This document shows positions 43,501 to 46,500 of a DNA stretch of 64,000 bases, piece by piece (within the stretch, counting starts at the first letter, position 1; every line of letters starts with the position of its first letter). Source of the stretch: Octopus sinensis. Lineage: Eukaryota. Both the position numbers and the translations under genes were made by a program. The notes beneath the pieces were generated by a model. That model made no database searches. It saw only the letters and a program-made list of their open reading frames with translations, and was not told the DNA's origin. The stretch lies in assembly GCF_006345805.1 (NCBI RefSeq), contig NC_043002.1:108686001-108750000 (forward strand), given 5' to 3'.

Positions 43501-46500
43501 TATGACTCATTTTTGCTAGCTGAGTGGACAGGAGCAACGTGAAAGGTCATAATGCACAGCCAGGAATTGAACTCACGACTTAACTAACTCATGAGCCAAA
43601 TACGCTAACCACTGAGCCAGGGACCTATACATTTAGGCTTTTGATAAAATATCAATGAAGTCAATACTTCATTGATGTTTAAGAAGCTGTTTTGTCTTTC
43701 TGAAAGCTATAAAAAAATGGATGTGATTATTTGTTCAGCTGCAATTTGTTTCTGACTGAATGAAATGAAAGTGAAAAATAAAATTAAGATAAATAAGAAG
43801 CAAAGTTGCCTCAGGATGTCAATATTTTTGGAACTTCGGTGTTTGCCGCCAATCCCATCCCAAGAGCGAATCAATCTTCGGAGGTATGTCGTATGAATCT
43901 TCTCGGCTGCTTTTTTCCTGTAGTGGACATGCAAAATAAAGCATGCAGTCAAGGTAACTAACTATAACATTCAGAAACATCAAAGGTGCCTTCGTGTCAT
44001 TAGAAGAAGGGAGATGAGAGATGGGGGGGGCGGAGTAACAAACAAGGAACAGCAGAAACGAAACGTGTGTAATGGATGTCCTACTAAAACAGAAAATGTC
44101 TTGGACAGCTATGATGAAATCATGGCACAAAAGAAAAAATAAATAAATAAACACATTATTTACATAATTCCTTAAATATAGAACTAAATAAACAGTTTAT
44201 TTTCAAGAGGTAAATGTGTAAGATATTTTGTCTATTCAATAAGTTTAAAATATACAGAGTAGACAGGTTTTATTTTTAATCACCTAAATATGCATTCAAG
44301 CAAAAAAAAAAAAAAATTGAAAATATCATTATTTCAAACTTCAGTGGATTTTATATGTTAGCAATAAACACCATAATTATGTAATAAAGATACATAATTT
44401 AAATTGAATTAATTTAAAGTGATGTTTACTCAGCTGGATTTACTGCAGTGTTATAACATGCAGGAGTCTAATGGCCTATCAGTTACTCTGGATATAATGT
44501 TTGATATTTATGCATCAGTTCTCTCACTCATATATATATATATCATCATCGTTTAGCGTCCGCTTTCCATGCTAGCATGGGTTGGACGGTTCAACTGGGG
44601 CCTGGGAAGCCAGAAGGCTGCACCAGGCCCAGTCTGATCCGGCAATGTTTCTACGGCTGGATGCCCTTCCTAACGCCAACCACTCCGTGAGTGTAGTGAG
44701 TGCTTTTTATGTGCCACCGGCACAGGTGCCAGACGAGGCTGGCAAACGGCCATGATCGGACGGTGCTTTTTATGTGCCACTGGCACGGAGGCCAGGCGAG
44801 GCTGGCAATGGCCATGATCGGATGGTGCTTTTTATGTGCTACCGGCATGGAGGCTAGTCGGGGCGACGCTGGCAACGGCCACGTTCGGATGGTTCTCTTA
44901 CGTGCCACCAGCACTGGTATCACAGCTACAATTTCCATTGATGTTGATCGATTTTGATTTTGATTTTTGATTTACCAAAAAATAAAAATAAAAGCTACAA
45001 TAAAAGTATTATTATAGTTATGATAGATATATTATTATGATTAACGACAATATATATATATATATATATATATATATATATATTAGACAAAATGAGATAA
45101 CAAAGCCAAGGATGTGAGGAGTTTTCAGGACATTTATAAGGGAAAAGATATAGATATAGTTTTACAGCTGTAAGGCTTTATATCTTTTTTCCTAATAAAT
45201 GTCCTGAAAACTCCTCACAGCCTTGGCTTTGTTATCTCATTTTATCTAATGTATATATGCATGCTAATGCAAGACCCACATTAGACTCCTCACTCGTATC
45301 ACTAGCGAACCAAGAGTTTAACTACAGTCTGTCCATAGCAATTACTTAGCGTTACCTGACACTCTTTGGATCTTCTAGATACCAATACCTATCATATATA
45401 TAATGTTCAAAATGTGGAGTAGATAAAACAGGGGACAACTGATGAAGGGATTGTTCTTTATGTTGCCGGTCTCGTTTTTCTATTTGTTTCTTTCGTTGTT
45501 TGAAAAGAAGTTCGTTTTCCATGCTTTTGTTTTTTTATGTTCTCGTTTTTTTATTTTGTTCACGTTATTTTTTGACGTCCTGTACTCATATATGCATGTA
45601 TATATACATATACATGTAGGTATATACATATATGTATAATGCATATATATATATATATATATATATATTGTTATATTATTTATATTATATACACACATAC
45701 CTACGCACACACACACGTATACAACTTACTCAAAGCAGGAAGGGATGTACCCACTACCTTTACCTTTCAGTGATTACATTGTACCATCATGGTATATGTT
45801 GTCTACATGATTAATTATATAAAAAATTTGTTGATTGTTTTAAAAACAGAGTTACAAATTCACAACTGAATCTTTTTGTGAATGTCTATAAGAGTGAAAC
45901 AAAAAAAATACCTTAACTTTTAGACAAATAATATTAATGTACAAGAATAAATGGATAGTAAGAACAAATACCTATCACTGGTCTCTGTACGATATAATCG
46001 ATTCGAGACAGAGGCAAGAAACGCTTGTACAATATCTTGGTCAACCTGTAAACCAGCTTTCAAACACCTGGAAAAAAAATAATTTGTTTTTAGATGGTTT
46101 TTTTTTGTCCAAGTATTATTACATTGATGAATTTTAAGAAAATATAAAAGTACTGCACAAAATTAAGGAAACATATAAATTTATAGACCTTATCAACAAG
46201 AGATTTTTATGAAAGCCAGCATAGACTAAATATGAGTAAACACAGAAATAAAATAGCAAAAAGAATAAATTAAGGAACCAAGTCTGAGTATAAAGCAACA
46301 AAATAAATAAATACGGAAAGCTTCTTAGAATGCAGAAAAGGGAATAAATTTAATAACCTCTTCACCACCATCTTTTTTTCTTTCTTTCCAGCTGGGATAG
46401 TTATGTATCTGTTCTACAGCAAGATCTGCTCCTGTCTCTCTATCATACTGTAACTTCTCAACACTTGGCACATAGCCACCTCCTTTCAATACTACATCCT

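Follow-up and report, generated by a model that had tools for sequence, protein, structure and literature searches.

A candidate GC-donor cassette exon in the PI4KA gene of Octopus sinensis, at the intron that holds cassette exons in other molluscs

An open, in-phase block in a long intron of PI4KA

The DNA analysed here, hereafter the window, is a stretch of 64,000 nucleotides (nt) of the Octopus sinensis genome (GCF_006345805.1, NC_043002.1, positions 108,686,001 to 108,750,000), which carries exons of the lipid-kinase gene PI4KA on its minus strand and, within one of the introns between them, a 108-nt block (43810..43917, minus strand) that is a candidate cassette exon with a GC donor. Three full-length relatives served as tblastn queries against the window, and 18 secure PI4KA junctions were mapped with them. 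The host intron (40618..45971, minus strand) is flanked upstream by a constitutive exon (45972..46067, minus strand) that ends GTGATAG/gtatttg, the slash marking the splice junction, and contributes the AG of a split arginine codon, and downstream by a constitutive exon (40434..40617, minus strand) that starts caacag/AGAATCT, ends GGATGT/gtgagt and codes for ...MIMAGC. This intron was measured at 5,354 nt and is in phase 2, as given in the initial annotation of the locus (5.35 kb, phase 2), which had been made from the sequence alone. The block consists of 1 nt, 35 codons and 2 nt, is open in the phase of the host gene with no stop in its translation, and yields a peptide that begins and ends with split arginine codons, (R)...(R). 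The earlier description of a stop-free 108-nt stretch with an acceptor, a GC donor and a length matching the intron phase was confirmed in all its parts by reading the minus strand.

The 3' splice region (43918..43953, minus strand) contains a branch-like CTTGAC at 43953-43948, already pointed out in the initial annotation, a moderate pyrimidine tract (65% pyrimidines) and an AG at 43919-43918. The acceptor reads ...ccactacag/G, the bases just 5' of the block being ctttattttgcatgtccactacag (..ccttgactgcatgctttattttgcatgtccactacag); the A of CTTGAC falls at -32 from the exon, and the sequence is AG-free from there up to the acceptor. Two Rbfox-type GCATG motifs are located upstream of the block, at 43946-43942 (-29) and 43932-43928 (-15). 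The donor, GAG/GCAACTTT (43802..43812, minus strand), has its GC at 43809-43808, and the exon end CTGAG/gcaact continues as gcaactttg, the donor-proximal codons being ATT GAC ATC CTG AG/gc. It matches the consensus AG/GCAAGT at positions -2, -1, +3, +4 and +6, and has C at +5.

The block contains six CpG dinucleotides, as its earlier description as CpG-containing implied, with an observed/expected ratio of 1.08, compared with 0.52 for the intron. It is higher in GC and CpG than its surroundings, and it is open in a second minus-strand frame as well as being overlapped by two plus-strand open reading frames (ORFs) of 43 and 51 amino acids (aa); together with a short interspersed element (SINE)-like repeat 190 nt away, these features would fit a block that is not a sense-strand exon and belongs instead to an antisense transcript, a small RNA, a regulatory element of the intron or an unrecognised low-copy repeat. 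This explanation was judged very improbable. A search of the whole intron against Rfam (E <= 1) gave no match at or near the block, its sub-threshold microRNA (miRNA)-family matches being confined to AT/GT microsatellites and one hairpin, and the reading of the block as an intronic small nucleolar RNA (snoRNA) or miRNA was rejected for want of any Rfam match to it at that threshold; no tRNA or tRNA-like gene was called at the block, and its translation has no word in common with any protein of the collections searched. The initial annotation had also called the block non-repetitive: no second copy was found within the 64-kb window, and, as a test for an exonised transposon, the block was found to overlap no repeat family detected in the window, the nearest being the SINE-like element at 43326-43620.

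Chance level within the window

Open stretches between potential splice sites are plentiful in an intron of this kind. Frame-keeping, stop-free AG..GT/GC candidates of 30-300 nt numbered 278 in the host intron, compared with 178 +/- 35 in Markov-1 random introns. Position weight matrices (PWMs) of the splice sites were built from the 18 mapped real PI4KA junctions, with no penalty for GC, and the block ranked fifth among the 278 by its PWM splice scores. Its donor context, scored without +1/+2, reached 4.6 bits, which exceeds 13 of the 18 real donors and places it within the top 0.4% of the GT/GC sites of the intron. The initial annotation had taken the donor to be weak owing to its C at +5; the base is indeed C, but about half of the real PI4KA donors also lack G at that position, and the context as a whole outscores most of them. 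All 18 mapped donors are GT.

From the features of the window alone the block is not more than chance would provide, and it stands out only by comparison with other species. A chance pseudo-exon, that is, an open, in-phase intronic stretch between an AG and a GC that is never spliced in and is unrelated to any cassette of other molluscs, is a substantial alternative, although less probable than the explanation that we prefer below. The large number of candidates, among which the block is only fifth, its openness in several frames on both strands and the GT dinucleotide at every other mapped PI4KA donor are what such a pseudo-exon would lead one to expect; the rank of the donor context among the intron sites and the clean branch site followed by an AG-free zone are not.

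GC-donor cassettes at the same intron in other molluscs

An exhaustive HMMER search was performed over 1.84 billion representative proteins with a query composed of the upstream exon, the block and the downstream exon. A single protein aligned in one stretch through the block, KAH9492192.1 (P0074), the PI4KA of Bulinus truncatus, which carries a 34-aa insert, VLNTKSADARWKQLRMAMKFINPTSANFEPIDVQ, between ..LYRAELSD(R) and (R)ESNLISTN. The insert is encoded by a 105-nt exon (L004 23894-23998; GCA_021962125.1, JAGDYQ010000199.1) that reads tttttttag/GGTATT...CCAAAG/gcttgc and thus has a GC donor. The gene models of Bulinus come from funannotate/EVM, with RNA-seq, PASA and StringTie as evidence (PMC8861042), and we infer that this exon rests on RNA-seq reads; the cassette is known in Bulinus from this single deposited model.

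The Bulinus peptide was then used as a tblastn probe on loci of mollusc-like ENA assemblies fetched around the downstream exon, and cassettes of 99 nt were detected in L005 and L006 (E = 9e-8 and 1.5e-6, respectively). The cassette of L006 (ERZ25073285) is placed between both flanking exons and reads ttctcag/GCCAGAT...TTTCAAG/gcaatt, coding for (R)PDMTAETRWNQLKIVMRFLRPNGAKLSEEDVS(R), and that of L005 (ERZ25074796) has the donor AAG/gcaatt and codes for (R)QSMTAESRWNQLKIVMRFLRPNGAKLSPEDIS(R). When JGI metagenome contigs were scanned for the pattern of the cassette profile, a further, likewise mollusc-like cassette of 105 nt was found in L012-L014 (Ga0224511 and Ga0224510), which ends GAAAG/gcaatg, with AAG/gcaat(g/a) as the donor across the three contigs, and codes for (R)QNNGKKAEDRWNQLRIVMRFLRPAALQMKPADVE(R). 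All the comparator cassettes (Bulinus, L005, L006 and L012-L014) end AG/GC, and inspection by eye of the printed flanks, in the comparators and in the window, revealed no nearby in-frame GT donor that could substitute for the GC. The kind of exon proposed in the initial annotation, a frame-preserving cassette with a GC donor in PI4KA, therefore exists in exactly this intron in Bulinus, L005 and L006 and, as a cassette, in L012-L014, whereas the suggestion that this type of exon is lineage-specific was not borne out.

Comparison of L005 with L006 showed that the sole colinear conserved island of the intron, which is about 9 kb long, is formed by the cassette with 27 nt upstream and 108 nt downstream; this island is 85% identical, which equals the identity of the constitutive exon. 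The ratio of nonsynonymous to synonymous substitution rates (dN/dS) between the two was 0.10 when the entire cassette was counted and 0.03 within the core, which in the comparators is RW[NK]QL[KR][IM][VA]M[RK]F[LI][RN]P. The homologous exons, their GC donors, the conservation between L005 and L006 and the low dN/dS indicate, at the level of sequence comparison, that this position of PI4KA holds, in several mollusc-type lineages, a genuine coding cassette that is under selection and has a conserved GC donor.

The intron 3' of the cassette is also conserved over about 105 nt (L005 1497-1601, L006 4857-4963) and includes CATTTGTAGCCCTTTCACACTTT. A (C)TTTCAC motif was seen by eye at +31 to +36 after the GC donor in L005, L006, L012 (about 1590) and the window (TTTCAC, 43771..43776, minus strand, about 34 nt 3' of the donor); it is a shared intronic motif, identified with low confidence, and may be a splicing enhancer for a weak donor.

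The host intron differs widely in length among lophotrochozoan-like sequences, being absent in some, about 90-240 nt long in others, and 3.6 to more than 8.5 kb where the cassette is present. At four loci (L007, L008, L010 and L011) the intron measures only about 90-240 nt and holds no cassette, and some lineages lack the intron altogether (P0001 and similar proteins), the proteins compared being P0001, P0002, P0008 and P0016. Every cassette found sits in a long intron, and none of the short-intron loci carries one; in L009 the intron is also long, but the contig stops short of any cassette. The cassette starts 35% into the intron in Bulinus and 41% in L006, and the block of the window at 38%. 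In a very AT-rich organism (P0112, ENA, 1207 aa, residues ~515-560) the same PI4KA loop is occupied by an insert of about 40 aa that is asparagine-rich, of low complexity and unrelated to the cassette, which shows that the loop tolerates insertions. At the L008 locus, retrotransposon-type ORFs (rve integrase, RVT_1/RT_RNaseH_2; 1810-3625, minus strand) were found upstream of PI4KA and are unrelated to the cassette.

No insert homologous to the cassette was present among the vertebrate or arthropod PI4KA matches. A word-index protein search with the exon-block-exon query gave 73 PI4K_N matches, none of them with the block and none above 92% identity, and a second one, with a four-row alignment of the cassettes, gave two candidates, of which only the ORF of L005 itself was recovered at E <= 10. 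Both are weak as negative results because they missed KAH9492192.1, which the exhaustive search recovered, although this protein matches the first query exactly over stretches of 12 residues and contains the entire Bulinus row of the second. An exact look-up of the ORF of the window exon returned no record, and no transcript or near relative of the window species was found in the collections searched, the best exon matches being <=92% identical in aa and 72-78% in nt; the closest, L001-L003, are short contigs in which only the exon could be aligned (72-76% nt). PI4KA-related full-text literature searches found no description of a cassette exon in this gene. GC-donor alternative cassettes are a known kind of exon, and the snail exon is present in one deposited gene model.

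Relationship of the octopus block to the mollusc cassette

The block shares with the comparators several of the features that define the cassette. It is located in the same intron and phase, between the exons ending ..SNRLY...SD(R) and starting (R)ES.LISTN; its exon-final AG is followed by a GC donor (GAG/gcaact); its length of 108 nt (99, 99, 105 and 105 nt in the others) is a multiple of 3, and it is open, with arginine at both junctions. Its 3' splice site appears usable, with a branch point, a tract, cag/G and no intervening AG. A template derived from the comparators (an open, in-phase exon of 93-114 nt whose final AG precedes a GC and whose acceptor is no worse than that of the block) was searched on both strands of the 64-kb window (128 kb), and exactly one element fitted it: the block, within the correct intron. 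In Markov-2 simulated introns the probability of a template-fitting element was 0.032 per intron. A sole fit in 128 kb to a template taken from four other lineages, in the correct intron (P about 0.03), argues against a chance pseudo-exon.

All five sequences end in xD[I/V]x-(R), with IDIL-R in the window, and the combination of this end with the rare AG/GC donor also speaks against a chance pseudo-exon. The 3' end of the block resembles that of Bulinus most (ATT GAC ATC CTG AG/gc versus ATT GAC GTC CAA AG/gc), with a donor-flank match at 12 of 24 non-fixed positions when the last 18 exon nt are included. The Bulinus exon is also alike in its intron and phase, AG/GC donor, length divisible by 3 (105 versus 108 nt), position at about 35-38% of the intron, and net basic peptide ending IDVQ-R versus IDIL-R, although the two peptides cannot be aligned by BLASTP, the Bulinus donor is gcttgc rather than gcaact, and its acceptor is stronger and T-rich. 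The cassettes of L005, L006 and L012 are located in the same intron where the flanks are present (L006), have donors, AAG/gcaat(t/g), close to the GAG/gcaact of the window and likewise without G at +5, measure 99-105 nt and end in xD[I/V]x-R, and GCATG occurs upstream in L012 (-42 from the acceptor) as it does in the window; in contrast, their core, which is under strong purifying selection, is missing from the window block, and profiles made from them miss it. With a donor-flank PWM made from the last 18 exon nt and 10 intron nt of L005, L006 and Bulinus, the donor of the block ranked 1st of 5,353 intron positions and 3rd of 127,946 in the window, and, with the four fixed bases disregarded, it was still 1st among the 316 AGGC sites.

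Several results weigh against the block being a member of this family of exons. The donor-flank rank is not robust, falling to 9 of 316 once L012 joins the comparators, 131 of 316 with L012 alone and 4 of 316 with Bulinus alone, so that the likeness depends on the choice of comparator. BLASTP of the block peptide against the Bulinus and L006 cassettes gave no match, and nothing was detected at the block by tblastn with the comparator cassettes, by hmmsearch with a protein HMM of four cassettes over the six-frame window, or by nhmmer with the DNA cassette profile; nor was a frame-shifted RWNQL motif found in the other reading frames of the block. End-to-end alignments, tested by shuffling, were marginal (p = 0.04-0.09 for nt, p = 0.24 for aa). 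The W, Q, M, F and P of the core RW[NK]QL..M.F..P, invariant in the four other lineages, are all missing from the block, even though the flanking exons of the window (77% and 89% aa) match L006 at least as well as the Bulinus exons do. The acceptor, which is the weaker of the two sites, had a PWM score of -0.1, which exceeds only 5 of the 18 real acceptors and lies within the top 8% of the AG sites of the intron; the codon-usage log-likelihood failed to set the block apart from other pseudo-exons; and its CpG observed/expected ratio differs from that of the real exons of PI4KA (0.54). The lack of profile homology in protein or DNA, the unstable donor-flank likeness, the uninformative codon usage and the CpG content unlike real exons are equally what a chance pseudo-exon would show. 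In addition, the nominal probabilities given above are optimistic because several of the tests were framed after the comparators had been seen. The comparison of the block with mollusc PI4KA loci proposed in the initial annotation led to positional cassettes, for which dN/dS was low (0.10, L005/L006), but not to any detectable homology with the block peptide itself.

A decayed relic was also considered: derived from the ancestral mollusc cassette, the block would now be unused and unselected in this lineage, its interior having drifted while its ends and open frame persisted by chance. The position, donor type, size and 3' end that the block has in common with the comparators, the complete loss of a core motif that is constrained elsewhere (dN/dS 0.03-0.10) and the mediocre acceptor are consistent with such a history. 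Nevertheless, 36 codons have stayed free of stops, the length has remained divisible by 3, and AG, GC and branch site are intact; the lineages without the cassette shrank the intron to ~90-240 nt or lost it, whereas that of the window is 5.35 kb long; and a CpG observed/expected ratio of about 1 is unexpected for drifting sequence in a CpG-depleted gene body. We regard the relic as unlikely, clearly more so than a chance pseudo-exon. The explanation that we prefer, to which we give about an even chance, takes the block for a positional counterpart, strongly diverged and still spliceable, of the GC-AG cassette of mollusc PI4KA, and most likely for its orthologue.

The GC donor and expected inclusion

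Typical GC donors compensate by a near-perfect match to the remaining consensus, above all by G at +5. The donor of the window is like that of U2-type GC-AG introns at alternative exons in its GC at +1/+2, A at +3 and +4, T at +6 and AG at -2/-1, and unlike it in the base at +5, which is C or T in the window, L005, L006 and L012. To judge from their sequences, the donors of these four are unusually weak GC donors, and this weakness appears to be conserved across them. If the block is included, splicing would use a normal AG acceptor together with a U2-type GC donor that is weak. We expect partial, controlled inclusion in view of the missing G at +5 of this GC donor, the mediocre acceptor and the two GCATG motifs upstream, and inclusion would probably be regulated rather than constitutive. 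The statement of the initial annotation that GC donors are enriched at alternatively spliced sites agrees with the literature (PMC2490688), in which the link between GC donors and alternative splicing is established (PMC2490688, PMC7242645).

Repeats and other elements of the host intron

Several repeats are also present in the host intron. The SINE-like interspersed repeat at 43326-43620, which lies 190 nt 3' of the candidate exon without overlapping it, has copies at 18571-18746, 24359-24611 and 9443-9619, with ~75-80% identity; a tRNA-like head, GGTCCCTGGCTCAGTGGTTAGCG, is present on the minus strand near 43620, where ARAGORN calls no tRNA. An inverted repeat (45074-45146 / 45186-45258) has 73-nt arms that are 93% complementary, a 39-nt loop and (AT)n flanks; it gave sub-threshold Rfam matches to plant and animal miRNA precursors, the best of them with 71.6 bits against a gathering threshold of 110, and is probably a hairpin resembling a miniature inverted-repeat transposable element (MITE) and not a miRNA gene. 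Tandem repeats of ~62-63 nt (44682-44899; 3-4 copies, 66-86% identity) have ~60% GC within the AT-rich intron, and fragments related to them were found at 41955-42067. Another interspersed family, with a unit of ~210-225 nt, is represented by two tandem copies at 42810-43235 and a further copy at 41081-41213 (78-85% identity).

Position in the protein and predicted structure

The essential and highly conserved kinase PI4KA sets plasma-membrane phosphatidylinositol 4-phosphate (PI4P), and to our knowledge its horn has few assigned functions beyond the N-terminal contact with TTC7 and the calcineurin-docking loop. The flanking exons of the window align to residues 576-607 and 609-667 of human PI4KA, which, as the initial annotation had stated, reads straight through the site (..ISQESDK607 / A609HLI..) with no insert. 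The insertion point is therefore the loop equivalent to human K607/D608, in the alpha-solenoid horn. The solenoid/horn of PI4KA comprises aa 27-929, and its calcineurin-docking IKISVT loop is located at 538-549 (bioRxiv 10.1101/2024.04.09.588654), which places the insertion site mid-horn, ~60 residues (two helices) past that loop. The earlier placement of the insert in the helical solenoid holds, as a loop of the horn, but the site is not at a described TTC7/FAM126 interface. Relative to the human horn (PDB 9B9G/9BAX), the flanking exons align and the calcineurin motif is kept, whereas the human loop lacks an insert. The docking motif reads IKITVT in the window (exon region 48667-49134, minus strand) and IRITVT in Bulinus; the tblastn block at 48667-49134 (minus strand) seems to read through a short intron.

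Inclusion of the block would keep the frame and recreate an arginine at both junctions (AG/G.. and ..AG/A), and would add 36 residues between the solenoid helix before the junction and the helix starting ESALISTN. AlphaFold2 was run on a 129-aa fragment and gave a mean predicted local distance difference test score (pLDDT) of 64, with ~40-50 over the insert, a low confidence at which the model serves as a hint only; in it the insert forms a helix, then a disordered loop, then IDILR joining the next helix. At the same low confidence, the insert would be a basic amphipathic helix with a Gly/Ser/Lys-rich loop, and its IDIL-R end would extend the next helix. By residue count its net charge is about +6, versus about +2 to +3 in the comparator cassettes. 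It is possible, though we hold it somewhat more doubtful than the chance pseudo-exon, that the window lineage kept the shell of the exon (position, phase, size, GC donor and D[I/V] end) near the calcineurin motif while its peptide was almost wholly rewritten to a more basic helix. A role of the insert in contact with the membrane or with a partner is speculation.

Discussion

An exon of this kind is easily missed in annotation because GC donors and low peptide conservation defeat ab initio and homology callers alike. If the block is orthologous, it is an unusually diverged member of the mollusc cassette; if it is a look-alike, only a candidate is lost. The cassette would be a clean natural case of a very weak GC donor kept over deep time. 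Should the shell of the octopus exon indeed have been kept while its peptide was rewritten, an insert that binds a partner or the membrane would have been retuned in this lineage alone, within a lipid-kinase scaffold that is otherwise extremely conserved. A conserved, selected GC-donor cassette that adds a basic helix two helices past the calcineurin loop would mark a regulated surface of the PI4KA horn in molluscs.

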